Of a DNA stretch of 64,000 bases, positions 34,692-64,000 are shown in pieces; within the stretch, counting starts at the first letter, position 1; each line of letters begins with the position of its first letter. The DNA lies in the NCBI GenBank assembly GCA_964035545.1, contig OZ037767.1, forward strand, positions 28,846,628-28,910,627. Reading direction: 5' to 3'. The position numbers were made by a program, and so were the translations under genes. This DNA comes from Bugula neritina (lineage: Eukaryota; Animalia; Bryozoa). A model generated the notes under the pieces. It did not search any database and was not told the DNA's origin. It worked only from the letters and a program-made list of their open reading frames with translations.

Positions 34692-35694
34692 AACACTAGT
34701 AGCAAATATATTTAAAAGATAATATGTGTACACTATGCCGATGAGAAGAGGCAGGGCATAATCAAGACTAAAGAAAAAGCCAAGAGATATTGAAAGTTTC
34801 AACAGCAAAACCTTAGTAGTTCTAGCTTCCACTTATTAGCTCAACAAATACATGTTAAACAGGCAAGTCGTTACACAACTAGCAATAATCCCAATGATAG
34901 TCATGCCATCATTATTATGATTTTAGGTTCAGGATTGATCTAGCTAGTCATGGTTATAAACAAACTGTAGCAGCAATCAATAGTATAATGATAAGCATAA
35001 TGGTGATGAATATTATAGTGAAACTGAATAGGTGGTCTACCTTTAGGTTTCACTTTGAATAATAAGTTTAACTTAAACTTATAATTATAACTAAAAGTAT
35101 TACCATTACTTTTACCATTTAAGTTACTATAACCAGTAGGCTATAGATCTATCATCTATCATTTAATTTTATGAGTAGACTACCATACTTGTACTAAGAG
35201 TAAGTTCCTATCAAATTCAATCAGCTACTAGGATATTATATATAATCTAATACTTAAACTAAGAGTAAACGGCCAAGTCTTACTGATAGTAATTATAAGG
35301 TTAAGACTAGTACTACTACTTATACTAATAGTAATAGACATAGTAAATGTAATAGTAAAAAGAGTAAGTGTAACTGTAGGCTTAAAAGTACACGGAAAGG
35401 CAAGACTAAGAGTAAGAGTAACTGCAAGTGCTCTTGCCTCGTAGACTGAGACTGTAGCATAAGGACAAAAATCAAAGGTCTGAGGGGGGTTGCTCAGCCC
35501 GAACTTTCACTTTCAGCATGAGCATTTATTTTATAAGCATTTAATTTTAAATTCCTGAGTATCAGTATAAAAATAAAATATTACTAAAATAGAAGTTCAT
35601 ACTGATAGTCATAGTCATAGTGATGCTGATAGTCATACTCGTAGTGATATCCATATTGATATTCAATTTCACATTGATATTCTGATTCATATTG

Positions 35695-37348
35695 CAACAT
35701 TGTACAATCAGGCTGTTTGCTGATGATGCCCTGGCTTATATGACTATAAGGAACAATGGTGACCAAATAAGTTTTCAATCTGGTATCAATAAATTAGCAG
35801 AGTGGGCCACTAGCAACCAAATGCAATTCAACATTGATAAGTGCCACATAACTAAATTCTGTATGCATAAAAACAAAAATACCAGGAATATTCCATATAA
35901 TTATAGCCTTTATAACAAGAATCTAAAGTGTGTTGACCCCTTCAAATATCTGGGAGTTACAATCAGTAACAACCTTAAGTGGGACCAGCACATTGCTAAC
36001 ATTACATCTAAAGCCAGCCAAAAATTAGGGATGATGAAAAGTGCTCTGTATAAAGCCCCAAAAAAAGTTAAACTAATTGCTTACATAACCTTTTGCAGAT
36101 CTATTTTGGATTATGCAGCGGAAATATGGGATCCTTATTTGGATAGACAGGTTGAACATCTTGAACAGGTGCAAAGAAAGGCCGTGCGATTTATTTGCAA
36201 TATGAAAGGACGTCAAGATAGTGTGAGTGAGAAACTAGAGCAGTTAAAACTAATGCCACTTAAAGGATTGCTCTATCTTGTCTAATAAATGGCCATTTAG
36301 GTCAAACACACATAATATTGTGTTTTTCTAAGCATGCATTGACAAAAAGCATTTGACCAAAGGTAGAAAAAGTTAGTTGAAGTTGAGGGTGTAGATTGGT
36401 AACAGCCAAAACGCCGATTTTGAAATGAGCTGGGAACTGTGACGTAACAGCGCCAGCATTCCTGCTGGTCACGTGACTATACAAATGAATAACTATAGAA
36501 ATATGACTGTGAGATGTGATCTTTCAGCTCGTAATTTGTATATTTATAGAAGTGCAAATGTGAATTATCTCAATCTATAGTTTTTTGACATTTTATATAA
36601 CATGTATGTGATACAATTAGGCCATATTTTGCTTGTAAACATTAGAAAAAAGCATTGCAAAAACATGCATTCTTTAGGATGAATGTCTGCGATCGATCTA
36701 AACTAGGTCAGATTGTGCAATATTACGGGCACACCAAAGCTGACCTATATAGCGCACTGTAACTGCTTGAGCGTTATTGGTTGATGTTGTGCTCAGCAAC
36801 CTTGAATACTAGCATTATAGTTAGCACGTGCAGCATAGTTACTGGCGTTCACACGTCACGTATTAGGCTATTCTTTTTCATGGCTGAAAATTTTACCTCC
36901 CTCAAAATTGGAATTTTGAAAAGCTGTTTTCTAGGCACATATCCCTTTGCAAAGTCACAATTGTTTGCATACACATCAGATTATAGTTCATAATTATAAT
37001 GTGATTGTAATAAACTAAGATTGAGCAATCCTTTAAACAGAGGAGGAAAACATCTAGGATTAAATTAATGTTGAGAATCTTGGGAAACTCTGCTCACTCG
37101 TCATTAGCCAAGTCCTTTGATAAACTTGTGGCCTGTGATTCCAAAACTAATGTCCAGACTAGATCTGCCACTAAAGAGTTACCACCTGCTCTTGCTGCGA
37201 GTAACAGTTTTCTGCACAACAGTTTTGTCCATCGCACTTCACGAGATTTAAGATCATAAGACTTGTAGTAATCAACAATCACAGGTCTGAAGACCTTAAC
37301 TTTCCCATATATAGGGGTCTAAAGGTTCAAACAAAACAAGAACAAGAA
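35695..37348 (+). mobile_element. 5'-truncated LINE (CR1/L2-like RT C-terminal half) split by a nested insertion
   Basis: LFADD, FNIDKC, FKYLGVTISNNLKW, IWDPY motifs in ORF 35692-36285. The frame resumes after 37036 (LMPLK-QRRKTSRIKL...RDLRS*, stop 37259). (AAGAAC)n tail at 37333-37350; possible TSD CATATTG at 35688-35694 and 37349-37355. Confidence 0.9.
36264..37032. mobile_element. Non-autonomous TTAA-site DNA transposon (Kolobok-like) nested in the LINE
   Basis: TTAA at 36260-36263 and 37033-37036; 16-bp TIR aggattgctc(t/a)atctt with one mismatch; excision restores the LINE ORF. Confidence 0.88.
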
Positions 37349-38508: not shown

Positions 38509-41500
38509 ATGACTGAGAGAAAGACTTTGAACGTAAGTATAATCTAGTGTTATTTATTGATAATGATTATGATTATCATAATCTTTGTTAAGTTATTTAA
38601 AATAAATAACAATGACATTATCATGATGTCATTATTGTTTATTTTAAATAACTTTTAGCTTCAAGTTTAGGTATAACACCAACAGTCGGCATAACCATAA
38701 ATCATTTGGATTTATTCAAGGCAAATATTTATATTGACCTCAAAAAGGTTCACCATGAGTAATTACTAATTAGTATACAATAATAATTGTGTGGTACCAC
38801 TCAATTGATTGTATAGAGTAGACACTATGGTTGCACTTATAGACGTTAGATTGTGCTCATTCACACTGATTATTTTGTCAATCAAAACGAAGAGAACTAT
38901 CAGTATCAGTATTGCAATATAAATACCATTGCAGTTTCTCACCAAGAACCATTAGAGACACCAGAGTGCATATAAAAAATAATTAACACAATTTTCAATT
39001 AACCTGTAGTCAAACTGATTTCACACTATAATAAAATGAGACACTTCTATAACATTACGTGTTCCCAATTGTTCGATATCTTCAAAGGTACAATATGTAC
39101 TTGTTCTATGCTGTATAGTTCAAGCTTTCAAATACAATGTTTAATTAGAATAAAAATGTTACGAGTAAGTTGAATAAATGTGTACTTCATCTCTTAGTCT
39201 CATTATGACAAATCAGTTAGTTGAGTGTGAGTTTGTGATACCTTAAGATATAGATAAATGTTGCATCCCTTCAAACTGTAGGTAAAGCACATTCATTTTT
39301 ACTCCTACTTTTAAATAGAGTGTGCTCATTTAGCATAAAATGGTTAACCAAGGTTATTCAACATAAAAGTGTAAATTAATATAAAAGGTTGAATTGTTTT
39401 AGAGATACTACCCAGTGGACTATGATCCTGCTAAAATTCCTAAGCTCAAAACCAAGCAGAAGGAGCAAAACCGTTTGTGGGGTATTCGAGTGATGGCCCC
39501 TTTTAATATGAGGTACTTGTGGATCTTGCTAACTGCCATTATGAAGAACTTAAATAACATATCAAGCATTAAAACTATTTTTTTTATGACTACTTCTTAT
39601 TTTGTGGACCATTCATTATCAATGTTATATATCATGTATTATTTTAAAAAATTTACCTGTGTTATTTGATAAAAACAGATCTATCTAATTTCTATTCTTT
39701 ATTTCAATAATTAATATTTGTATTTATGCAGATGTAATACATGTGGAGACTACATCTACAAGGGTAAAAAGTTTAACTCAAAAAAGGAGACAGTGTCAAA
39801 TGAAGATTATCTGGGAATAGAGATTCACAGGTTTTATATTAGATGCCCAAAATGTGTAGCTGTTATAGCTTTCAAGGTAGGTCTTAGTATTCCAGCGGTT
39901 TATTTATATGACCTCATTCATAATAATTAGCAATACAATTTGTTTTAGCACTACATTGGTGCCGGTGTATTCATCAACCTTTGAAATTTGGAAGCAATTC
40001 TAGTTATTCTGAAATAACTACAAACTCACACTGTGCATGGTGCATCTGTCAATAATTTTAGATCAGAATTGCCAATTCTGGCAGATTCTTTTTTAGTGAT
40101 TTTTAACTTTAGAATAGATGCGTATTAGTAATTGATTATTAGTAATTGAGTATTAATAATTGATCATTAGTAATTGACTATTAGGAGTTGAGTGAGTGTA
40201 CAGCTGCAAATTTTGCTGTAGACTGACCCCAAGAACTGTGACTACACCCTGGAAACAGGCGCGACCAGAAACTTTGAAGCTGCTAAAACTTTGATGGAAC
40301 AGGAAAAGAAAAAGCAGCAAGCAATAGAAGATGAAGAGGCAGCAAATCCTATGAAGGTCAGCGCCATATAAAAGCCTCACTCTTCTGGCAGAAATTGTCA
40401 GTTGTATCTATTATCTAGGTTAAAAGATCTGCGCAAATGTTATTATCTGTTGGAGTTTTAAGGCTTTCATCAAATGATTAAGCACTATTCAATTGAAGTT
40501 GAATAATAAGATCATTTAAGTTTTGTAATTGTTGATGCCATTTTATTTCATCATTTTTACACGAGCTGATGCATTACTGCGCTCATTTATGGAGTATTGC
40601 ATGTGGTGAAATTTAAGGTGCTAGAAAATCGAACAAAACAGAGCCGTAATGAAATGGACACGATGGAAGCTTTGACTGAGCTGCGAGAAATGAATGCACG
40701 ACATGAGAAAGTTGACCATGACGGAATAATTAGAAAGGCCAAGTTATACCAACAAGAGTTAGAGCGTTTGCAAAAGGAAGAGGAGGATCGTCTAATTAGG
40801 TATATACATTCCTGACCTATATAGTCTAATTAGGTATATACATTCCTGACCTATATAGTCTAATTAGGTGTATACATTCCTGACCTATATAGTCTAATTA
40901 GGTATATACATTTCTGACCTATATAGTCTAATTAGGTATATACATTCCTGACCTATATAGTCTAATGTCAAAACTCAAAAACCTACTCTTAACTTTTAAT
41001 TTGGAGAAATATTTTGTCTGGAAAGTATTTATTACAAATTCTCTTCTATTTTTAATAGTCATGTTGAGAAATTTCGTATTTTCAACATTTTCTTCATCTA
41101 GCACATAATGTAGTATTTAGGGTTAGCAGATGTTATTTACTTAATTTTAATTTCCTATTCAAGTACTCTGATAATTTGGAAAAAGTTTTCCTCTAAAAAT
41201 ATCCATTCATAAGGGTTTTCTCTCTGTCTAAAGTTTGGAAAATCTGGTTGCTGTTGTAAAATATAGAATTACCATTTATTAATTTGTGAATTGGGCCTAT
41301 TGATAATTTGATAATAAGTATAAGAGAAGTAACTCCCAATTAGTCTATAGCATGCAGTATGTTATCTTACAGGGACTTGTTTGGTTCTGCTGAAGAGGCA
41401 AATGGGGAGACAATAAGGCGTATAGACTCAGATGGTGAAGATGATCCTCTTCCTGTGAAAAGAGTCAAAGTAGAGATAGAATCGCCTTCTGATTTACTTG

Positions 41501-42139
41501 GCCAGTCGGTAAGATTTCACAGATTCTTATTGTCTACTATACATCTGCTCTGGTATTTTTGCTTTAATGTAACTTATCATGCATATTTTAATGTGTATTT
41601 TATTTAAATTAGTATGTCTATAAGCAATGTTAGACATATGCATGATTCTATGATAACCCTTTCATTTAAAATAGTAAAGAGCACAACTAACATGATCATA
41701 TTAGCTGGTATGTATTGATGGCTTCTAATGTAATATTTGAGGTGTTCCTAGATGTTGAAAACGCTTCTACTTTTAGACAAACCCACCTTCTACTTCAAAG
41801 AGCTTGCCGCATAAGAAAGCCCAGTCTACAAAATTGAAGTTATCCAACTTGGTTCGTTTGAAAAAACCTGAGAAGTCTAATAATACAGACGAATCGCATC
41901 TCACACCTACTACTAACAGCTGTTCTGCAATAACATCAACGAAACAGGGTACCGACGACTCCAATGCATGTACATCTAAGACAGATGACACTACCTCTAC
42001 TAATTCCACAGCTAATGACTTTAATATTGCTAATTCAAATCCATCAAGTTCTGGTATTCAACAAGTCAAGCCAATTGGAGCTCTAGGTATGCTCGGTGAC
42101 TACAGTTACAGCAGTGAAAGTGGCTCGGATAATGAATAA
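38509..42139 (+). CDS. YJU2: Splicing factor YJU2/CCDC94/CWC16, complete copy 1, 7 exons
   Basis: Exons 38509-38532, 39403-39512, 39732-39876, 40222-40356, 40618-40799, 41373-41508, 41777-42139. [74 protein letters not shown]. Confidence 0.95.
40791..40965. repeat. 34-bp tandem repeat x5 that duplicates the YJU2 exon-5 end and splice donor
   Basis: tctaattag|gtatatacattcctgacctatatag units at 40791, 40825, 40859, 40893, 40927. Confidence 0.92.
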
Positions 42140-42708
42140 ACTCAGCTATATTCATATATTATTACTCTTATAATTTTTTGTTATCACAGGCAAAAATTAG
42201 CATATTTTGGGAAATAATATGAGATATATATATATATAGAATTCAATATAATGTTTCCAAGCTGGTAATTTTTATGAAATGATGTAAATTTGTATAAAAG
42301 TGAATTATAATAACAAAATAAAATTTCAACTCATTGGCAATCATAACATTTTGTTACTCAGAAAATACTAACCTACGCATATTCTTTTAAACACTAAACA
42401 GAAGAATCAGATTATAACTTATAAGTTTAATTATCCTAACGTTATATTCAATATTACACTGCACACCATTCAACAGTTTATTATACTATTCAATATGTAA
42501 CCACGTCATTATAGTTGGTAATATCGCGATATCCCCAATTATGCTTAAATTCTATAATCGTAATGTGGTGGGCTTTTGTTCATTCAGCAACAAAAGAACT
42601 CTATTGATCATTGAAGTTATCTACTCCCGTGCATGACGACGCTCTTACACAGTAGGTAAAGGGGAGCATCTACAATTTCTTCTTTAGTGAGAAAGACTTC
42701 TGTTTCGG

Positions 42709-44956
<2,248 letters not shown>

Positions 44957-46278
44957 TGTTTCGGTGACTAATAGCTCTTTGATTTTTTAGATGGATGACT
45001 CGCTGTCCATAAATGCTACTGCCGATACTGCCTGCTCACACAATAATGAGCATCTTCCAGCTAGTAGAAGAAGACAACTCCGTCAGAGATAGTCTTGGCA
45101 AATGTCCTCTATGTTAACATGTACAGTAAGTCTTGAGTATTTTTTATAGTCAATTGTATGCATCAGCTAAAACACCTGATATGTTTATGATACATGTTAG
45201 TGTTACTGTAGGTTGATGGAGATTGCTGGTGTTGCCATTGCAGACTAATCCATGTCAAGAGTCAAGTATATCACATTGATATTGGTATTTATTTTGTTGC
45301 TGCTATTTTTTTGGCTCAGCATTTAATATCAACTGTGCTTCTATTCATTTGATTAAATTTGAGATCCCTAAATGGCAAAGTTTCTCTTGTAGTCTCACAC
45401 TAAAGTAATTAAAATTAATAATTGAAAGAAACTTTTATCATTAGACTAATTGTTTACAAACTGCCTATAGTGACATATGTTATGTAAACTAAGTCATCAT
45501 AATATAATCACTTTACAAATGTGCTATATTAAATTTATGCTGTAGTCTCTTTGGATATTAAACTCCATTTCAAATTCCATAAAATTCAATTTCTATGTAA
45601 CAAATATTTCTAACTATAAAATAATGTAAAACATTGACAACCTATCCAACAATTTAAAGCTATACATTATAATTAAAATGATACCCAATACTTCAAAGCT
45701 ACTATAATTAGGATAAAAAATTACCTATATAAAGCAATGAAAGAAACTTCAAGCAATTTTTATAAAACTTATTTGTGCTGTTATGGCTTCAGGATAAAAT
45801 TCTCTGTTCTGATTAGGTAAATCAAATTTAATTTTATTATTTCAAACGGCCAGGCCAAATTTTATAACTTTTTAATCCACTAAGCTTATATTTATGTTAT
45901 ACTAGAAAGATGCTGATAGCTTTGTAAAGCAATACCTATTTGCCTATAAGTGAGGGTTTAACTTATCAATATTTCAAGGGTATTGTCTAAACTACCATGG
46001 GGATCTACAAGCAGGTGTACTTTTAGTAAATGGGTTCATTATACCTAGCTCCACCATTTTTCAAAAGAAATGCATTCATTGGATGAAGAGCAAAATGAAG
46101 TAGCCAGTAACATGATCCCGAACAAGATTTACAATTTGATTGGTTGGATGGTGACTAGGGCCTCATTTCTTGCTATAATATAAACCCCATCTCAGGTCAG
46201 TTTCATCAGTAAAGGCAACATATACAACTATACAGAAGAGAGAAAAGTCACTGAATACTATAACTACTATAAACAAAA

Positions 46279-47086
46279 ATGGCTCAAGCTGAAAATAATA
46301 TAACAGAGCTAAGTAGAGAAGCCAAGAAGAAAATTCTCTGCAGATATCATACTAAAGGCATCTGCCGGTACCAGGATAACCCTGAAAATGTGAGTATATA
46401 CAGGTTTTAATATTAAAATATTTTGTTTCAAGCTATTATTAAAAAGAAATTAGCTTTTTGTAGCTGCTTCTGAATTAAATATATGAGACTCGAAATTTAA
46501 TGGTTGAACTGGTTTTAAACTTTAACTCTTTACATGGACTGATTGATGTAACTTGATGTATGAAAAATACCACTACCTCAATACAGTATTAAGGAGAGAA
46601 TATAATACTGATTATAATAAATCCTACAGTGTGAATACAAGCACCTCCAGGAGTTCACTAAGCACTTCCAAAGGAAGGAACCATATTGCCCTTATGCTGT
46701 TAAAGGAGTCTGCTTCTATCAAGATAATCCCCTGATGGTGAGACAACTTCAGTGCCCTTTATAACTTACAGTTTTGTTTCTATTTAATCTTCCTACAAAA
46801 TATTATTAGTAAATGGAATAAGTAACACATCACTTGATTTATAGTACTGTAAATAACCAGAGCCCTTGAAATTCTGAAGTTATTATATTATTAGTTTTGA
46901 GACATCATCAAATGTAAAGTAAAAAAATATATGTTTGTGTGTGAGCATTGTAGAAAGTGTTATGTGTAGTGTAGCCCTAACAGAGTTTATTACTTATAAA
47001 TGTATAAACTATTTTACTTTCAGTGTTCTTACTTGCATCCCAAAAGAACTCCTTCCCATTGGAAGGAAAATAAACTGCGAAGATGA
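46279..47086 (+). CDS. Small tandem CCCH zinc-finger protein, 93 aa, 3 coding exons (absent from the ORF track)
   Basis: Exons 46279-46389, 46630-46737, 47024-47086, all phase 0 with gtgag donors and cag acceptors: MAQAENNITELSREAKKKILCRYHTKGICRYQDNPEN/CEYKHLQEFTKHFQRKEPYCPYAVKGVCFYQDNPLM/CSYLHPKRTPSHWKENKLRR*. Good start context aaaaATGg with an in-frame upstream stop; 3'UTR intron 47142-47339; AATAAA 47393-47398. Confidence 0.85.
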
Positions 47087-50000
47087 AACACGTGATAGAA
47101 TCTAACTCAAGCCCTGTGGACATTCAGAGTTTCATATTGAGGTGAGACTTCAACTATTACTTCACTGACAGTAGTTACAGTTTAGTCTTATAAATAACTT
47201 CATACTAGAATAAAGTGCTATAATCTTGGCATTAATTTTAATTTTGGAAAGCGCTAAATCTTTTCACTAATTTTTATTTATACTTGAAACATTCAGATGA
47301 TAATTTACTTGTACTAACTCACTGTTTTTCTTGTTTTAGTGCATACAGTGGTGGCTGCAGAGATCCCAAACATGCCCGTGGGGGTCGCAAGAAATAAATT
47401 ATTCCAATTTTTAGAAATCCAATTACACTGTATTTTATATGTATTAAATTATCTAAAAATTATCTTTAATATCTTTAAATTTATTGTAACGCAGAAAATA
47501 TGCAACCAAAATTAATAAATTTAATTAGCAAAACTTGCTGATCTGACATTAAATTAGAAATGCAGCACTTCATACAAAATAATATTATATCAAGTTGAAA
47601 GTGAACTGCATGTATCAGATTATCTTTATTCTCAAGCATTTTATTTTATAAACCTCTTTTCTCATAAATTTTTTAAGATATTTTATAGGAAGTTGCAATT
47701 CTACATTTCACAATCTATGAATTTTCTGATGCTGAATTATACAAATTGGGAAAATTGTTTACATTCTATAAATTTATAGGTACAACATAAAATGATGTCA
47801 ACTTATGGAAACAAATTCAACTATTTTGCCTGCAGTCTGCAAACAACAATAACAAATATAAAAGATATTAGGAAACCATCTGCTCTTTCTTCTCTTAACT
47901 AAAGTAAGATGTTCTCCAACTAACTTTACCATCCCACAAAACTATCACAATGTTTGCTGCAATCATAATTTATCATCTATCAAAATTTTAAGGCAAGAAT
48001 AATTTTATGTAGATTCAAAATTTGATGAAATATAATGAAATTGTTTTTAGTTTGTCGCTATGTATTGATTTAATTATTCACATGCTGCAGCAACCATGCA
48101 GCTCTGCATCCAATTTCAAAGAAGGAACTTTATTCTTATTCTCAAATTACAGAATTCATTTTAATGACCATAGTACTTACAGATTGCAACACAGTTATCT
48201 GGGTTGAGCTGTGATTAGCTGGTTGGCCGGCAGTGTTTACTCATAGTTAACTCTTATTGGCCAGTCTATAGATGTCCCAGTGTATATACCAAGGTGACAG
48301 CCCAGAGTATAGTTAGAGTTGTGCTTGTTTTTTGTTACAAGTTTATAGTTATGTACTTTTCTAGTCAATAATAAAAGCAGCAGGTTTTCTTTTGCATAAT
48401 AACCAGCAGATTAAACAATAGGGTTAGCTTTTCAGAATTACCCACAGTAAATTTATAAGCAGGTAAAATTCATTAAACTATCCACCAAGCAGCTGTTTCA
48501 ATTCACAAAAGTTTTTGGGTCTTCATTGAGAAAGGGTCAATTTTCTTTAGAAAAGATAACTCCTATATAAACTAGATAGCTATAATTTCTAAGCTTTGTA
48601 TAAAATAGCTAGCTTTATCTGCAGTGTAGCTAGCTATAAAAAAGAAAACAGCTATACTCTCCTTGTGTGGTCTAGCCAGCTACAAGCAAGGAAATAGCTA
48701 TAGTTACTCTGTACAGTATAGGTATAGCTAGCTACTTGAGCTAAGCTATTTTCTGTCGTATGCGGTATATAAGTCAGTCCAGTGTGAGACTTAGCAGTGT
48801 GACTTCAAGAAGATATGGATTAACATTCTCTTCTCTCTACCTCAGTCTATCTTTAACTAATTGGTGAGTAGTACTTTATTTATTTTTAACAAAAACATAA
48901 AAAATTGTATTAGTTTTTTAATAATTGGTTGATTTACTTAATTTTCAGCTATAAGCAACATATATGCGTTTTGATACACATTTGTTTCTAAATCTAGTAA
49001 TCGGAATTTGTATACTCCCTCAAATTGCTTTTGTAAGAGAGTTGAACTTCATATGTTAACATTCTAAAACTAAAATAATATGTAACTCCAAGGTGATTAT
49101 ACTTTTTTAATGCCATTTTTGTTTGGAGACTCACTACAATAATATGGTAGGTGAGCAATAGTGAAGCTGTTTATATAATAGTATACTTACTATATTATTA
49201 CTACACTGCACTCTCTCAAAACACTATTTTCTCTCCATTCGGGTAATTGGCTGCCTTATATATAATAATTAACTTCTTTTAGAAGAGTTGTGGTTCCATT
49301 CCATTAATCCAAAGCTATTCCTGAAACAAATGAACTACTTTGAGGAGTGGGATTTGTCTGCTCATATAGAGATTGATAACTCCTGAAGATTTAAAGATAA
49401 GTAGAACACTTATATAATTTATAAAATATTTGTAGGACTAAATTCATTAATAGTACTAAATTATGTTGTGTCCTTAAGCACATTACTAGTCTGGAGAGGC
49501 TATGGGTTGAGTTTTATCTTTATTTGTAACATTCACCTAGCCTTGTAACACTTCTATTCTGCAGTTGCTGTTCACATTGTTAAATAACAAAAGTGTTACA
49601 ATATACCAAAACAATGTTTTATAGGTTCTATCAAATTAAAATTTGTTGAACTGGGTTTAAAATGTTTAATCAGTATTATGTATAATTTGTAACTATCAAA
49701 TAACTTTGCAAGCATTTTGGTACCAGCCAGACATAAAATCAAAAGTATGTCTGCCATGTTTTTCTATTTGTTGAATGAAAGTTTAGTTTCCATCAAATGT
49801 TCACCTTTGCCATGTTTTGATCTGGTGACAGGAAAAACCACATTATGAAAGCTTTTTTACTATCCTCTCTCTTTTTTACTGACATACTTATTGTTAGTGA
49901 TCTAAAATGTAAGATTAGCCCAACTTACCAGGTTCACAATAGAATCACAACTCCCCAGCTGTTCACACTATGTCCATTCAGTTCACAGCTAATGCAAAGC

Positions 50001-51359
50001 TATATCTTTACTAAAAGCTCTGATGTCATAACTACAATCTCAACATTGCCACAATCCTCCAAAAATGATTTGGTCTTCTGCAAGTTCTGGTAAATAGCAC
50101 ATTTTTAGCTCCCATGTGACTTCGTCAACTTCAATTTAAAGTAAATGTTGAATTTCCCAACTATAAGTTAGCTAAATAACTTTCAGAAGACTTACAAGTG
50201 ATTATAGCTGGCATATATTGTACAGTTGTTGAGGTTTAGTGTGGATAAGAGGAGCAGCAATGCCCCTAATTGCATGTGTGAATTGGATATGGTGGTTTTT
50301 CTTGCCTATAACTATAGAAATGACCATTGTCTCACCTTGTACTCTTTTTGTTGCTTCTCCAATGTGAAAACTTTTGTCTATGGTTTTACTCGCAACAGCA
50401 GCTCATTCATAGAGTTGTCCTCCCCCTATTTTGCACTAAATGTTAAAGCAAGAGGGTTAAGCATTCAGCTATACCCCCCCCCCCTTCTTCATTATAGTTT
50501 CAGTTCCGTGGTGGTAAGTTAATTAAATCCTACTCAGCATTATTAATGTTGTGTGTATAGATCTGCATATCTGGAAGAACTAACCAGATGGTGTAAACTG
50601 TAAACATATCAACAGAGTCCTTTGAGTGTTATCTGCTGAATGCTATACTTAAATAGTTGTACCTGACCTCTAGCAGAATATAAAGTTAAAAAGTTTAAAG
50701 CATGCAACCTAAGGTTGTAAAAATCTGTGCAAATATTTGTTCTTTGAGTATACAAAACAAAATTCTTGTTTTCATTAGATCTTCATATTTTTACCTAAAC
50801 TTACATTCACAGGTTATTTAGCAGCTTGTGCTTTTTCTTGTTAGAGGTGAATTATTGTTGCTCCTGTCTGACAAGTAATATTTATGCAAGCTGTGGCATG
50901 GGAGATCAGTTCCATTTCAGAATTTTTTGAAACTTAATCCCCTCCCACGACTTTCAATATTAGTGTGACTTAGTAAATTTGCAACCTGTATAGTTTTTTA
51001 AGCTGTTGTCTATTTTTTTAATAGTTTCAATAGCAGAAAGCAGTTAACAGGAACGTAGCAGACTATTCTATTGCTGAAAGTAAATAAAATAGCTATACAT
51101 TATTTTTGTCAGTGCCATTTGGTATAAATTTGAAAATACTTTTTGTTAATTGTTTTGTTCTTATATTTTTTAGCCAGCAAAATTTTTTTCAATTAAATCA
51201 AATCTTAATGAGGCATCAAAACCCTATTGGTATAACCTGATGTGTTCACTAATCTGTATCCTGACTGATCAGAAGTGCTGCCGAGTTCAAGATCCTTCTT
51301 TCCTGATACTTTTTTTGAGAAACTCTGCTTTATTGTTGGCATCTTTCAATGCTGCTTTA

Positions 51360-51640
51360 TTAGATTTGAATTAGCATTATTAGAGTCATTAGCTGTGGAA
51401 TTAGTAGAGGTAGTGTCATCTGTCTTAGATGTACATGCATTGGAGTCGTCGGTACCCTGTTTCGTTGATGTTATTGCAGAACAGCTGTTAGTAGTAAGTG
51501 TGAGATGCGATTCGTCTGTATTATTAGACTTCTCTGGTTTTTTCAAACGAACCAAGTTGGATAACTTCAACTTTGTAGACTGGGCTTTCTTTGGAGTAGA
51601 AGGTGGGTTTGTCTAAAAGTAGAAGCGCTTTCAACATAAC
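51360..51640 (-). pseudogene. Inverted fragment of YJU2 last exon plus acceptor
   Basis: Reverse complement of ~41750-42040 and ~53735-54030, with a small internal deletion; truncated. Confidence 0.9.
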
Positions 51641-52918: not shown

Positions 52919-54686
52919 CATTCCTGACCTATATAGTATAATGTCAAAACTCAAAAACCTACTCTAATTAACTTTTAATTTGGAGAAATATTTTGTCTGA
53001 AAAGGATTTATTACAAATTATCTTCTATTTTTAATAATCATGTTGAGAAGTTTCATTTTTCCAATGTTTTCTTCGTCTAGCAAATAATGTAGTATTTAAG
53101 GTTAACAGATCGTATTTACTCGATTTAATTTCCTATTCAAGTCAAGTACTCTGGTAATTCGGGAAAAAGTTTTCCTCTAAAAATATCCATTCATAAGGGT
53201 TTTCTCTCTGTCTAAAGTTTGGAAAACCTGGTTGCTGTTGTAAAATATATAATGACGATTTATTAATTTGTGAATTGAGCCTATTGATAATTTGATGAGT
53301 ATAAAAGAAGTAACTCCCGATTAGTGTATAGCATACAGTATGTTATGTTACAGGGACTTGTTTGGTTCTGCTGAAGAGGCAAATGGGGAGACAATAAGAC
53401 GTATAGACTCAGATGGTGAAGATGATCCTCTTCCTGTGAAAAGAGCGAAAGTAGAGACAGAATCACCCTCTGATTTACTTCTTAATGGCCAGTCGGTAAG
53501 ATTTCACAGATTCTTATTGTCTATACTATTCATCTGCTCTGGTATTTTTGCTTTAATGTAACGTACCATGCTTATTTTAGTGTGTATTTTATTTAAATTA
53601 GTATGTCTATAAGCATTGTTAGACATATGCATGATTCTATGATAACCCCTTCATTTATAATAGTAAAGAGCACAACTAACAGGATCATATTGGCTGGCAT
53701 TAATGGCTTCTAATGTAATATTTGAGGTGTTGCTAGATGTTATGTTGAAAACGTTTCTCCTTTTAGACAAACCCGGCTTTTACTTCAAAGAGCTTACCGC
53801 ATAAGAAAGCCCAGTCTACAAAATTGAAGTTATCCAACTTGGTTCGTTTGAAAAAACCTGAGAAGTCTAATAATACAGACGAATCACATCCCACACCTAC
53901 TACTAACAGCTGTTCTGCAATAACATCAACGAAACAGGGTACCGACGACTCCAATGCATGTACATCTAAGACAGATGACACTACCTCTACTAATTCCACA
54001 GCTAATGACTCTAATAATGCTGATTCAAATCCATCAGGTTCTGGTATTCCACAAATCAAGCCAATTGGAGCTTTAGGTATGCTCGGTGACTACAGTTATA
54101 GCAGTGAAAGTGGCTCGGATAATGAATAAAGTCAGCTATATTCATATATTATTACTTTTATAATTTTTTGCTATCACAGACAAAAATTAGCATATTTTGG
54201 GAAATAGTATGATGTTTATGGCATTCAATATGATGTTTCCAAGCTGTTAATTTTTTATGAACTGATGTAAATTTGTATAAAAGTAAATTATACTAGCAAA
54301 ATAAAATTTCAACTCATTTGTGCATCATGACATTTTGTTAGTCAGAAAATACTAACCTACACATATTCTTTTAAACACAAAACAGAACTATCAGATTGTA
54401 AATTTAATTATGCTAATATTATATCCAGTATTACTTTGCACACCATTCAACAGTCTATTATACTATTCAATATGTAACCACATCACTATAGTTAGTAATA
54501 TCGCGATAACCCCAATTGTGCTATGAAGGTGAAATCCAACACTTTATTCCATGATCATAAATAATGTGGTGGGCTTTTGTTCGTCCAGTAACAAACGAGC
54601 TTTATTGATCATTGAAGTTATCCACTCCCATGCATGACGACGCTCTTACACAGTAGGTAAAGGGGGAGCATCTACAATTTCTTCTT
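52919..54686 (+). pseudogene. 3'-half duplicate of YJU2 (intron 5 remainder, exons 53354-53495 and 53767-54129, 3'UTR)
   Basis: Colinear with ~40943-42686; reading frames and splice sites intact but exons 1-5 are absent directly upstream. Confidence 0.88.
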
Positions 54687-56110: not shown

Positions 56111-59100
56111 CAGGGTTGGGGTAATTGTAATTTGTAATTGTAATTGGTTGTAATTAATTACATTTTTTCAAGTAATTGAATGTAATTTGTAATTGATGTA
56201 TAAAAATGTAATTGTAATTGTAATTGTAATTAATTATATTGCTAATGTAATTGATTTTTACAATTACTTTATAATTACATATCAATTACTTCGTATTATT
56301 TTTAACTCCTAAATTTGGTTTATACCTTTTTACCATAGCTACTGTTTAATAAGAAGTTCAAACTAATTCAAAATAGTATTGCATCACTCTACTACTCACT
56401 CCTAAGATTTCTCAGTGCAGTTGGATCCAGAGAGTGAGATTGCATAACTTATATTTGTCTTTTGTAAGATCAAAGGAGGTTATACACTAATTCACACCAA
56501 CGTATAGATGGATTTTAGCGTTGGAAGAAGTTATGTAAACATGTAAAGGCATGGCTAATTAATAGGTAGAGGGAGTCAATTCCATTTAAAGTTTTCACCA
56601 ATGTGAAATAAGAATAAAGGATGTTAATAGGGCTGCTAACACCTAGAAGGTAGCCAGTAAAAGAGATGTTGGAACAACATTACAAAATCTACTTATCTCC
56701 ATTGAAATTATCACCTAATTAATGCAAGCTTTCAAGGCCCACCTGTAGCCTGCTATAAAATTGGCCATGAATAAAGAAGAAGTTCATTCTGCATTGAGAA
56801 TTCTCTAAGCTAACACTGCAGCTCTAACAGTATGACTCAAGTTTGGGACCACTTCATTTTACCTGAAGGTTATGACAAGAGCGAAAACAACTTTAAAGCC
56901 AAATGCAAACATTGCTCATCATCCATCTCAGGATCCAGAAAAGCAACATCTAACTTTGTGACACATTTAAAGGTAAAGTTTGACAATTTATACATTCTAT
57001 TAATATCTTAGTTCTACACATAATGATACTATATTGTTTGACTGAGTTTATATGTTATTTAGTTTTATGAATATGATGACATAGCTTAGACATTAGATAT
57101 ATAAAACAGCTTGTCTAATAGACAAGCTATTTTATCTATCTGTTCAAAACAAAGCAACATGAATACATATATCACTTAAATGTTTAACTCTTGCTGTCTG
57201 CACTGTGTTTTTACAGAGGAAGCACAAAGATGTCCATTTGTCTCATAAACCAGCCAACATAGCCTCCTGTCAGTCAACTTTAAACACATTTGTTGTACCA
57301 ATTAAAAAGTACGGGCCCTGTGATTCACGACAGAAACAGATCACAGATCTTTTGGTGAAGACGATTGCTGGTGACTTGCTTCCACTTTCTTTTGTGGAAA
57401 GTGAAAACTTCAGGAGCCTAATGCAAACGACAGAACCTCGTTACACTATGCCCAGCCGGAAGCACTTAACCACCACCCTTATTCCAAACAAGGTCAAGGA
57501 AGTAGACAGAATAATGCGGGCACAACTGAAAAATGCTTCTTCAGTGTGTATTACTGTGGATATGTGGTCCAATCGACAGATGAAGGGGTTCATTGGGATT
57601 ACCGGTCATTACATCTTAAACTGGACCCTTCAATCTGTCATGCTAGCCTGCTCTCGTTTTCAAGGCCGTCACACTGCAGACAAGATCTCTGATCAGGTAG
57701 ATGAGACGCTAGCATACTTTGGAATTGATGACAAGGTTACGAATATAACTACTGATAATGCAGCAAACATGACTAAGGCATTTGGCTTACCAGGGTTTGA
57801 GAGCATAAAGGATAATGAAGAGGATTCAGATGAAGATGACAAAATGAATTATGAGGAAACAGGTGTGGAGCATGATCCATGCTTTGCACACACACTGCAG
57901 TTAGTGGTAAAGGATGGACTTAAGCAAGCTGGGTCATTAACTAAAGTTCTTTCTAAAGCAGCTCACATTGTTAGTTTTATAAGGCGATCAACTTTAGCCA
58001 CGGACATCCTTGAAGGTGAGCGGCGAGTCCAAGCTGCAACCTGCACTAGATGGAATTCACAACTTTTGATGATTCGGTCTATCTTGCGATTGTCAGAAGA
58101 AAGAATTGCAGACCTTGGTTGCCCAAAACTATTAACAAATGATCGTAAAACTCTAGAGGATGTGTGTGATATACTTGTGCCATTTGAAAAGGCCACACAT
58201 GCAGTGCAGGGTGACCAGGGTGTCACAGCTAGTTTTGTAATACCATGCATCCGTGGAACAAAACTTCAACTGGCGGAGATGGCACAGAAGTACAATTGCC
58301 GGTTTGTGTTGGCTCTGCAAACATCTTTTATGAAGCGCATGGCTTTGTACGAGAATAAGGAAGTCTTTCTCCTGGCGACAGCCCTTGATCCTCGCTTTAA
58401 ACTAAAGTGGTGCCAGGGGTCAGAGTTGGAGAAACTGACAACTGATCTAGTGCACAAAGCTGAGCGAGTGGCCGCAGTTAAAGAACCTTCTATTGAAGAA
58501 ACAGAGCCCCCTGCAAAGAAACCAAAACTGGATGGTGATTTCTTTGACTTTTTCCTCGAGTCACAGCCGGTAGTCAATACTCCATCATCTAATGCAAAGC
58601 AAGAAGTAGAGGAGTATCTTGCTGCCCCCCTCCTGGAAAGAACCAAAGACCCGATGACTTTTTGGGGGGTGAATGATTCAAAATACCCTCATTTGGCTAC
58701 TCTTGCTGCCAGGTACTTGGCAGTGCCAGCTTCCTCTGCCTCTGTAGAACGCTTGTTTAGTGTTGGAGGAAAAATTTTCAGGCCTGATAGATGTTGCCTA
58801 TCAGATCATGTGTTTGAAAATCTTATGTTTTTAAAATGCAATGGACATTTGTAAATGGAGCAAATAAACTTTTGATTAATATCAAGTAAAATAGTTATTA
58901 TTAATTTTTTGAATACAAATAATTGTTACTAATGGTGTGGCTAATAAAATTTAAAAAATGATGAAACTATGTTCCTATTCTTTCTGGTTTGGTGTCAAAG
59001 TAATTGTAATTGTAATTAATTACATTGCAATGTAATTGTAATTGTAATTAATTACATTACGTTTCAACTGTAATTGTAATTGTAATTGTAATTGATAAAT

Positions 59101-59157: not shown

Positions 59158-61858
59158 GTATCTAGACTACTACAGCTGAAAAACAGTAACACGAGTATTT
59201 ATTCAGTAGTCAGAAATTCTCAAGAGTTATGGTCCAAAATATGTAAACATAAAATGCACAAAGTACCCTTCAAAAACAAATCCATCTAGTTTCTTGGAAC
59301 TGAATTGATGCTGCAGTGTGACCTCACTCTGTAACAAATAAAATAGCTAATACAAAACATGATGCTATAGCGCCAATAAAATAAATGTTCTATTTGTTGC
59401 CAAATCACCTCTAATAGAGGAACCGGTAATAACTTCATTGACTGAGCAAATGCTGTTTCAGCATTGCAGAAATGACATTTAGTCAACTATTCAACTTCTG
59501 ACCAGAACAATTTTGTCCTATTGAAGAAAAGAGCATAAGTGTTTAGTGTACATACTAACTGTCACTTTAGGAATTATAAACTACACATAAGCAACAAATG
59601 TGTTCAAGCAATGTTAATGTTACCCAACCTATTGCATCGCATGTTATAAACTTCCAGTAATACCTCTGCAACGTCATGCTGCTCATTAGAGGTGAAGCCT
59701 CTAAAAATAAAATATGTATGTAAAAAAAGCCTCAATTGGTGGCTATTCTTGATTAAAATGTCAATTATACATTTGGTTTTTGATAAGGGATTTGAAATTT
59801 ATCGTTAGCCATGAAATTCAACCCTTGATCTGTGGAATTACTACTGGCACAATAACAAATGAAGCATATATAATAAAAAAAACACTAAAGTGAGACCAAA
59901 AGACCAAAACAGTGATCTACTACTTGATTAGAGTATGAAAAAACATGACTATTTATTCCCTATATAAATATAAGAAGTTAATTTAAATCTAAGTTTAAAG
60001 TCATAATAATCCCCTAAGAAAAAGATAAATTAAAATTACGTACTCACAATTTACTTGTATAGTTTAAATACATGCATTTAAAAAGCATGTATTTCCAAAA
60101 TTAGTTATGACTCTGTAGTCTGTAAAAATTATCGAAACAACAGGACCATTACAATGAATGCTAAACAATGAATATTCTTGACTTCAAATTATATAATCAG
60201 AACAACAATCTGGCTTAAAAAACCTAGACTTTTTGGCTTATTTAATATGAAAAAGACTGTTACCCTCACAAGACGAATGTCAAATACACTATATCTGCAC
60301 CACAAGACCAAAATGAGTCTTAACAGGGTATAAAATGGGTTTTAAGATAACATGTGACTGAGTGCTATAGCCATTTCATTAAACACATATATGTTTAAGT
60401 TCAACTGTATCAATATGAAAGTTTGATGCACTTTTTCTCAACGACTTGAATAAAACACTCAAGTAGTTTAAGTATTACTATCCATCTTGTCTTAGACTTA
60501 CTAATTATTAATCAATATACTATAAGTATAGTTATAAACTTATATTTATATTACAATACCAATTAACAATTACTGGTTAGTGAATTACATATATATTTAA
60601 ATGAATTAAAATAAACATAAGATAAGCAGATGTGAATCACTACTACAGTATTAGAATAAGAATACCAATACAATTATGAATTATTATTAATAATAATATA
60701 AAATTATATTAAAATACTAATAATAATACTACACTTTATATAATGACAATAATTATCATTATCATTATGATTATATTATTATTATTAATATTAATAATTA
60801 ATTAATTACTAAAATATTATTAATTAACATAATACTAATACTTATACTAAGTTTATTCGTAATAAAAGGCGGTAATAGTAATACTAATAGACAATAGTAA
60901 TAGAACTAGTAGCACTAACTTCAATAGTTATACTAATAGTAATAGTATTACATTTACTATTAGTATTACTATTAGTATTAGTAATATAATTATTACAATT
61001 ATAATAAATGTAATTCAATACCTAAAGTTAAAATGATCGTAATCTATAAGTATAAGTATAAGTTAATATATAATTATCACTATAACTACAAGTATAAGTA
61101 TAACTTATTAACTATAAGTATAAGTATATTAATTATTATTAATATTATTAATTAAACGCTATTAGTATTAGTATTAGTAAAAGAAATACTATTAGTATTA
61201 CAGTATTACTATTAGTATTACTATTGTGTATTAGTATTATTAATATTTCTATTAATAATAATATTAATAATAATAATATTAATAATCTTAATCATAATGT
61301 TATTATTTATTAAATTTAATAAGTAATATGATTATTATTTTATTTTAATTATTTAGTTAAAAAATGCTATTAATAATTTATAAGCAGATTGAGCTTACCC
61401 ATCTCTAGCTTCAATTGTTATATTGGAAAGTCGAAGTGAAAATTTTAGGTTCAAGCAAAAAGATGTAAGCTGTTCAGTTGAAGGGGTGTACTTGTAGAGA
61501 TGAAGATATCGCGTTGGGTGTGAGGGATGAAATAGACTAAGTACTTAACACGTTGCCGAGGTTTTCTTAATGCAAGATTATTTTAGTAATAGAGTTGTGT
61601 CATTTTTCAACTAAAACCTATGCTTCGTGCATACACGATAGTATTACGTAGCGAAGGCTAAAAAGATTGCTCGGTTGAGTACTTTTGCGCCGTTTCTGCT
61701 GAAATTTCCGCTTTTCCGTTTACGCAGTTTACAAAAACCGCTCAGATTGAAAAAGTTTCAGTTTGAGTTTGTGTTAACAATAACTCTAGTACTAGTACTA
61801 GTATTAGTTTTGATCTTGACCTCGTTTACTCATTTGTACCAAAAATTTTAAATAGACT

Positions 61859-64000
61859 ATGACTGAGAGAAAGACTTTGAACGTAAGTATAATCTAGTGT
61901 TATTTATTCATTATTGATAATCATAATCATTATGATTATGATAATGATTATGATTATCATAATCTTTGTTAAGTTATTTAAAATAAATAACAATGACATT
62001 ATCATAATGGCATTATTGTTTATTTTAAATAACTTTTAACTTCAAGTTTAGGTATAACACCAACAGTCGGCATAACCATAAATCATTTGGATTTATTCAA
62101 GGCAAATATTTATTATTTATATTGACCTCAAAAAGGTTCACCATCACCATGGGCATGAGTGATCACTAATTACTAATTAGTATATAATAATAATTGTGTG
62201 GTACCACTCAAGTGATTGTATAGAGTAGACATAATGGTTGCACTTATAGACGTTAGATTGTGCTCATTCACGCTGATTATTTTGTTATAATCAAAATGAA
62301 GAAAACTATCAGTATCAGTATTGCAATATAAATATCATTGTAGTTTCTTACCAAGAACCATTAGAGACACCAGAGTGAATATAAAAAATAATTAACACAA
62401 TTTTCAATTTTCAGTCAAACTGATTTCAAGCTATAATAAAACGAGACACTTCTATGACATAACGTTCCCAATTGTTCGATATCTTCAAAGGTACTTGTTC
62501 TATGCTGTATAGTTCAAGCTTTCAAATACAATGTTTAATTAGAATAAAAATGTTACGAGTAAGTTGAATAAATGTGTACTTTATCTCTTAGTCTCATTAT
62601 GACATGGTATCAGTTAGTTGAGTTTGTGATACCTTAAGATATAGATAAATGTTGCATCCCTTCAAACTGTAGGTAAAACACATTCATTTTTACTCCTACT
62701 TTTAAATAGAGTGTGCTCATTTAGCATAAAATGGCTGACCAAGGTTATTCAACATAAAAGTGTAAATTAATTTAAAAGGTTGAATTGTTTTAGAGATACT
62801 ACCCAGTGGACTATGATCCTGCTAAAATTCCTAAGCTCAAAACCAAGCAGAAGGAGCAAAACCGTTTGTGGGGTATTCGAGTGATGGCCCCTTTTAATAT
62901 GAGGTACTTGTGGATCTTGCTAACTGCCATTATGAAGAACTTAGATAACATATCAAGCATTAAAACTATTTTTTTATGACTACTTCTTATTTTGTGGACA
63001 GTTCATTATCAATGTTATATATCATGTATTATTTCAAAAATGTTACCTGTGTGATTTGATAAAAACAGATCTATCTAATTTCTATTCTTTATTTCAATAA
63101 TTAATATTTGTATTTATGCAGATGTAATACATGTGGAGACTACATCTACAAGGGTAAAAAGTTTAACTCAAAAAAGGAGACGGTTTCAAATGAAGATTAT
63201 CTGGGAATAGAGATTCACAGGTTTTATATTAGATGCCCAAAATGTGTAGCTGTTATAGCTTTCAAGGTAGGCCTTGGTATTCCCCTAGTCCGTTAATACG
63301 ACCTCATTTATAATAATTAGCAATATAATTTGTTTTAGCACCACATTGGCGCCCGTGTATTCATTAACCTTTGAACTTTCGAAGCATTTCAGTTATTCTG
63401 AAATAACTACAAACTCACACTGGAGGCGATGCATCTGCCAATAATTTTAGATCAGAATTGCCAATTCTGGCAGACTCTTTTTTTAGTGATTTTTAACTTT
63501 AGAATAGATGCGTATTAGTAATTGACTATTAATAATTGATCATTAGTAATTGACTATTAGGAGTTGAGTGAGTTTACAGCTGCAAGTTTTGCTGTAGACT
63601 GACCCCAAGAACTGTGACTACACCCTGGAAACAGGCGCAACCAGAAACTTTGAAGCTGCTAAAACTTTAATGGAGCAGGAAAAGAAAAAGCAGCAAGCAA
63701 TAGAAGATGAAGAGGCAGCAAATCCTATGAAGGTCAGCGCCATATAAAAGCCTCACTCTTCTGGCAGAAATTATTAGTTGTATCTATTACCTAGGTTAAA
63801 AGATCTATTCAATTGAAGTTGAATAATTAGATTATTTAAGTTTTATAATTGTTGATGCCATTTTATTTCATCATTTATGCATGAGCTGATGCATTACTGA
63901 GCTCATTTCTGGAGTATTGCATGTGGTGAAATTTAAGGTGCTAGAAAATCGAACAAAACAGAGCCGTAATGAGATGGACACGATGGAAGCTTTGACTGAG
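61859..64000 (+). CDS. YJU2: YJU2 copy 2, exons 1-5, truncated by the window end
   Basis: Exons 61859-61882, 62794-62903, 63122-63266, 63598-63732, 63938->64000; protein appears identical to copy 1 over this span, introns carry small indels. Confidence 0.88.

Follow-up and report, generated by a model that had tools for sequence, protein, structure and literature searches.

Makorin and RNF113/Cwc24-type ligases join one or more CCCH zinc fingers and a RING domain in a single protein of small or medium size, the RNA-binding proteins TIS11/TTP, CPSF30/Yth1 and MBNL carry CCCH fingers in tandem, and microProteins, small paralogues with a single domain that interfere with larger relatives of several domains (plant LITTLE ZIPPER and the animal Id proteins among them), act mostly by protein-protein dimerisation. 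The locus described here, from the bryozoan Bugula neritina, lies in a stretch of 64,000 nucleotides (nt) (assembly GCA_964035545.1, contig OZ037767.1, forward-strand positions 28,846,628 to 28,910,627; hereafter the window), in which a first-pass annotation had proposed a hidden gene for a minimal protein with two zinc fingers of atypical spacing. Judged by comparison with the rest of the genome (216 Mb), this 'hidden microprotein' is what is left of a duplicate of a small CCCH-RING-H2 gene restricted to this lineage, namely its two fingers, after a recent deletion of the RING. The window copy is named W, and the parent-type paralogue, named P, lies elsewhere in the same genome, on C2.

P is an intact gene at C2:2092821-2094310, comprising five phase-0 GT-AG exons that encode 152 residues, with the same two fingers as W followed by a RING-H2 domain. 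Exon 3 of P has no stop and reaches a GT donor, followed by an intron of ~280 nt; exon 4 (111 nt) reads PVIPDKQGTTDDCCICQDETRDKIYLKPCGHSEFHIE and, after a further intron, exon 5 reads CIKRWMQRSQTCPLCKRVTTGVYKK and ends at the stop codon. Because exon 4 corresponds to the first half of the Pfam domain zf-RING_2 (PF13639; positions 1-27, E 7e-5) and exon 5 to the second (positions 29-44, E 4e-4), P is, by its predicted translation, a miniature protein of two CCCH-like fingers and a RING-H2, the ligand pattern C-x2-C...C-x-H-x2-3-H-x2-C...C-x2-C standing in one open frame. The association of fingers and RING in Makorin and RNF113/Cwc24-type ligases is also the likely working principle of P, although their RINGs are of the C3HC4 type and their finger spacing is canonical, whereas P displays a RING-H2 and an eight-residue loop; the searches made detected no sequence relation between these ligases and the family.

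The relationship between W and P extends well beyond the coding sequence, with a collinearity that takes in introns and flanks, the finger exons being 90-91% identical at the nucleotide level (exon 1, 90%; exon 2, 91%) and the introns 76-83% (intron 1, 76%). An origin of W as a processed, retro-copied pseudogene is ruled out, since all introns and ~0.8 kb of upstream sequence were copied along. The first-half RING exon (exon 4) occurs in the genome only in P, plus a broken copy in the window, and the alignment of W to P discloses how that copy was broken, by three lesions: (i) a 325-bp deletion (junction ~47074/47075) that runs from the last part of exon 3 across the complete intron after it and 47 nt into the RING exon, so that the first Cys-x2-Cys is lost, and that shifts the frame by +1 into a new TGA stop; (ii) a TAA at 47103-47105 in place of the TAC of P, within a relic that reads C-EDETRDRI-stop-LKPCGHSEFHIE and that a tblastn-type comparison matches to exon 4 of P at 83% identity with one TAA; and (iii) a 20-bp deletion after ~47377 in the last RING exon, by which the last Cys is gone. 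With the first Cys pair and the last Cys deleted, the frame shifted and a TAA inside, no RING-H2 pattern can be read from W. The in-frame TAA and the 20-bp deletion, on top of the 325-bp deletion, show that the RING of W is no longer maintained. W is thus very probably a RING-deleted paralogue of a CCCH-CCCH-RING-H2 gene. Both RING relics lie inside the interval delimited by the first-pass annotation, where they were missed, and that interval ended at 47398 because an AATAAA lies at 47393-47398.

The two-finger part of W is as that annotation had described it, down to coordinates and translation: three short GT-AG exons join to a frame of 93 codons with the fingers C-RYHTKGI-C-RYQDNPEN-C-EYK-H and C-PYAVKGV-C-FYQDNPLM-C-SYL-H. 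None of the eight zinc ligands is missing, and the start codon, the frame and the four splice sites remain intact. The proposed homology of the two fingers also holds, their first halves sharing 58% identity across 19 residues (pairwise E 1e-8) and a phase-0 intron splitting each finger at the same position, which fits a duplication at the exon level; the position of intron 1 is kept in all paralogues. An independent DNA sequencing run at ~120x coverage is identical over 46087-47135, including the stop codon and the deletion junction, which excludes an assembly error as the source of the stop codon or of the sequence around it. Upstream of the start codon, a block in which two ATTGG boxes are accompanied by the motif GATTGGTTGGATGGTGAC and by TATATAAACC is conserved more strongly than any other part of the four copies (W, P, O1 and O2), the coding exons included, ATTTGATTGGTTGGATGGTGAC and TATATAAACC being invariant or nearly so in the alignment; we infer that it acts as a promoter.

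The remaining members were sought exon by exon throughout the genome, and all copies outside the window are confined to one cluster, C2:2.085-2.110 Mb. A degenerate DNA pattern consisting of a half-finger and a GT donor matches the 216-Mb genome 11 times and the reversed control not once, which exceeds chance; every one of the 11 belongs to W, P, O1, O2 or three fragments designated e2'. O1 and O2 are RING-less paralogues that end at a TGA in place of an exon-3 Trp codon, with a relic of the old exon-3 donor after the stop. As the same TGA is found in O3p, a 5'-truncated third copy of the O type, the O-type truncation predates the duplication of the O copies. The ratios of nonsynonymous to synonymous substitution rates (dN/dS), summed over exon-wise codon alignments, are 0.23 for O1 against O2 (7 differences at 43 synonymous sites and 8 at 194 nonsynonymous sites; Fisher p 0.008) and 0.17 for O2 against O3p (p 0.002). 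RING-less two-finger proteins thus seem to be kept by purifying selection in this family, the counts being small enough to call for more taxa. A search for the first-half RING exon near the O-type copies and near the orphan exon-5 copies found none.

The cluster also contains three orphan RING second-half exons, at C2:2085301-2085375 (+), 2103761-2103835 (-) and 2110072-2110146 (-), in which an AG acceptor and an open reading frame persist and which are 87-89% identical to exon 5 of P at the nucleotide level, far nearer to P than are the adjoining O-type finger exons (63-65%). No first-half RING exon lies within 2-3.5 kb upstream of them, and ~65 nt after each stands a 5'-truncated copy of exon 2 with a good donor. 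This pattern could reflect gene conversion or an unrecognised use of the exon.

A larger gene on the minus strand of C2 (C2:14263000-14271000) is informative on the ancestry of the RING. It encodes at least three CCCH fingers (x8/x5, x7/x6 and x7/x6, the last split by an intron) and a C-terminal RING-H2, the two halves of which are 44-45% identical to those of P, with the unusual C-G-H-S-x-F-H spacing in common and the RING intron at the same codon. In addition, the intron that splits one of its fingers is in phase 0 and directly precedes Cys3, so that both intron positions are common with P. Given the related RING halves and the two shared intron positions, the RING is ancestral and was not gained by P, and this gene is likely a deeper relative of the miniature family. 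It differs from P, W and the O copies (79-152 residues) in being much larger and in its canonical x5 and x6 loops (C-x8-C-x5-C-x3-H and C-x7-C-x6-C-x3-H) as opposed to the x8 of the window fingers, and the finger sequences of the two show no detectable similarity.

The accepted definition of the CCCH finger is C-X4-15-C-X4-6-C-X3-H (PMC2267713, PMC2478707). The ligand order Cys-Cys-Cys-His is kept in both fingers of W and in all eight complete fingers of W, P, O1 and O2, and the spacings between Cys1 and Cys2 (seven) and between Cys3 and His (three) fall in the allowed range, whereas Cys2 and Cys3 are separated by eight residues in every finger of the family, against the four to six allowed; for this reason, the fingers are called CCCH-like and are not assigned as members on spacing. 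They resemble the fingers of TIS11/TTP, CPSF30/Yth1 and MBNL in the order of the ligands, in the C-x7-C and C-x3-H spacings, in the aromatic and basic residues near the ligands, in the basic lead-in before the first Cys and in the tandem arrangement with a short linker (14 residues here), and depart from them in the eight residues between Cys2 and Cys3 and in a conserved loop motif, (Y/F)QD-x-P. The more specific TIS11/TTP tandem zinc finger, with two C-x8-C-x5-C-x3-H fingers 18 residues apart and an (R/K)YKTELC lead-in, was considered and rejected, the spacing here being x7/x8/x3 and the linker 14 residues.

Profile searches of single exons yield weak CCCH signals. Exon 1 alone scores 16.3 bits against zf-CCCH_4 (PF18044; E 0.0085, gathering cut-off 24.6) and 14.3 bits against zf-CCCH (PF00642; cut-off 20.5), both below the cut-off, while exon 2 alone gives no match, each finger being split by an intron. 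Weak matches of single exons to structures in the PDB are to TIS11d and Yth1 chains (E 0.1-0.3; TIS11d chain 1rgo, E 0.099). A profile of seven exon-2 copies (32 positions) found no relative among 1.84 billion representative proteins; its three matches were rejected as spurious, being Cys-rich repeats or generic canonical CCCH arrays that align at 10-14 positions. The finger type therefore looks lineage-specific, without a match outside this genome at the sensitivity of a 32-position profile, and the lineage restriction put forward in the first-pass annotation is borne out to that extent, no member being found outside the C2 cluster and the window. A full-text literature search returned no paper on the x7/x8 spacing.

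The first-pass view of W as an independent two-finger gene that never had another domain draws on the intact frame, the atypical finger spacing and the lack of relatives outside the genome in the profile search. It is hard to reconcile with the RING relics that follow the stop in the same order and with the same intron positions as in P, with the exon-3 donor relic retained after the stop in the O-type copies, and with the distant CCCH-RING-H2 gene that has both intron positions in common, and we consider it highly improbable: W is the 5' part of a larger CCCH-CCCH-RING-H2 duplicate, cut by the 325-bp deletion. The same annotation had named, as a finding that would count against it, that W is a fragment of a larger known CCCH gene present elsewhere; the evidence comes near to this, as the larger gene exists in the form of P, although P is not a described gene. 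An equally remote prospect is that the family represents cargo or a fragment of a transposable element. The locus does lie within duplicated DNA, and the window does contain a hAT transposase frame that appears intact (57205-58854) as well as a fragment of a reverse transcriptase (35692-36285); however, the 2-kb locus and the 1-kb block downstream of it occur only two to three times in 216 Mb, neither an attached transposase or terminal repeats nor dispersed copies with terminal repeats or target-site duplications were seen, and the introns and the TATA/CCAAT promoter are conserved.

The alternative that deserves most weight shares the RING-deletion origin and holds that W is a young pseudogene, killed by the 325-bp deletion and with its finger frame not yet decayed. 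In favour of retention, W and P differ by 11 synonymous and 17 nonsynonymous changes (dN/dS 0.31; Fisher p 0.007), and a neutral simulation that takes its substitution and indel rates from the non-coding alignment of the flanks leaves just 1% of copies intact if drift began at the duplication. Several observations nevertheless weigh against a functional W. The frame survives in 39-63% of simulations if drift occupies 5-10% of the distance between W and P, and the RING relics are ~10% diverged from P, no more than the finger exons, which argues that the RING of W was constrained for most of the time and that its loss looks recent. The changes specific to the W lineage are six nonsynonymous to one synonymous (four to two in P, with eight unassignable) and look neutral. 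A search of sequencing runs for the locus returned no RNA run, its sole match being a DNA run, which gave no splice junctions, and a collection of 15 billion proteins contains no protein of the family, spliced or not. In addition, a retained intron follows the stop of W after 55 nt, an arrangement that could make its mRNA a target of nonsense-mediated decay. The locus carries three disabling lesions, and the C2 cluster holds clearly dead pieces of the family (the e2' fragments, the orphan exon-5 copies and O3p). Against a pseudogene, all three lesions fall in the RING coding sequence (~190 nt), whereas the start codon, the splice sites and the 270 nt that encode the fingers have none, a split with a chance of ~0.1 if the later lesions were random; the promoter block is invariant; and the O type provides an older, second lineage of RING-less copies under purifying selection. 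We rate the pseudogene reading as a serious possibility that falls somewhat short of an even chance. That W is still a working coding gene, as read from its sequence, is a near-even call, with retention slightly favoured because of the precedent set by O1 and O2.

Table. Features of the W locus (window coordinates) and of the RING-less paralogues (C2 coordinates)
Feature	Position	Strand	Description
Segmental duplicate	45478..49585	+	Duplicate of C2:2092002-2096900; blastn and MAFFT, 74-84% nucleotide identity; low-copy
Putative promoter block	46078..46184	+	ATTGG (inverted CCAAT) at 46078-46082 and 46139-46143; TATA box TATAATATAAA at 46174-46184
Exon 1, coding part	46279..46389	+	ATG, 37 codons; N-terminus and first half of finger 1 (C-x7-C-x8); donor gtgagt
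Intron 1	46390..46629	+	Phase 0, gtgagt...acag; directly 5' of Cys3 of finger 1
Exon 2	46630..46737	+	Acceptor cag, 36 codons, donor gtgaga; C-x3-H of finger 1, 14-residue linker, first half of finger 2
Intron 2	46738..47023	+	Phase 0, gtgaga...tcag; directly 5' of Cys3 of finger 2
Exon 3, coding part	47024..47086	+	Acceptor cag, 20 codons and TGA (47084-47086); C-x3-H of finger 2, tail
RING first-half exon relic	47076..47141	+	Out of frame by +1; without first Cys-x2-Cys; aligned to P exon 4; donor gtgaga kept
RING second-half exon relic	47340..47399	+	Reads CIQWWLQRSQTCP; alignment to P exon 5
O1	C2 exon starts 2087251, 2087646, 2088072	+	79 residues, x7/x8/x3 fingers
O2	C2 exon starts 2108251, 2107853, 2107410	-	79 residues, x7/x8/x3 fingers

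Within the duplicated segment, a block of 1.07 kb located 3' of the gene (48464-49535) shares 84% identity with C2:2094950-2096046 and 73% with a third copy, at C2:2420444-2421367, and is better conserved than the introns of the gene; it contains no long open reading frame, and an Rfam scan of 44000-50500, which spans the block, gave no match. W sits between a gene for a Saf4/Yju2 splicing factor (39415-42139, +; Pfam E 4e-24 and 8e-12 on two exons) and duplicated fragments of that gene: its 3' exons have two downstream duplicates, one of them in inverted orientation, and the partial copies lie at 51275-51616, 53340-53561 and 53763-54129. The hAT frame mentioned above is uninterrupted over 549 codons on the forward strand and comprises a hAT dimerisation domain (E 2.9e-17) and a DUF659-like region, and the reverse-transcriptase fragment, on the same strand (RVT_1, E 1.3e-5), is probably the relic of a non-LTR retrotransposon. 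Two regions are very AT-rich (22-24% G+C), 42000-46000 and 60000-62000, with a long simple repeat of the (TA/TATA)n type at ~44295-44570.

As regards function, the parent type P would act as an RNA-binding ubiquitin ligase, in which the fingers would hold single-stranded RNA and the RING-H2 would recruit an E2 enzyme. Any protein translated from the truncated W would lack ligase activity while binding the same RNA or partners, and would so behave as a non-catalytic competitor, a role for which the older, RING-less O1 and O2 appear to have been kept. The 93 codons of W correspond to the two-finger module of the 152-residue P and arose by truncation, in the manner of a microProtein, and truncation of this kind arose twice in the family, in the O lineage and in W; in contrast to known microProteins, which rely mostly on protein-protein dimerisation, the family carries predicted RNA-binding fingers, and interference by them is putative. 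The competitor idea stays plausible because the older RING-less paralogues show purifying selection; for W itself we can only infer it. In its full form, namely that W, O1 and O2 are working competitors of the ligase P, made repeatedly by truncation in one bryozoan cluster, and that the C-x7-C-x8-C-x3-H module with its (Y/F)QD-x-P loop constitutes a new structural subclass of CCCH RNA-binding fingers, the proposal is tentative and, on balance, unlikely.

Should W be silent, it would be an ordinary young pseudogene, and a warning that an intact short frame beside relic exons does not amount to a 'hidden gene'. The cluster also contributes a CCCH-like finger whose loop is longer than the accepted definition allows. 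Of greatest interest is that the RING was lost repeatedly in this family: if the truncated copies are expressed, a ligase-less competitor would have been derived from an RNA-binding E3 ligase by simple truncation, twice independently in one lineage, and, if the competitor role is true, the family would show, in an animal, an RNA-linked E3 ligase regulated in the manner of microProteins.

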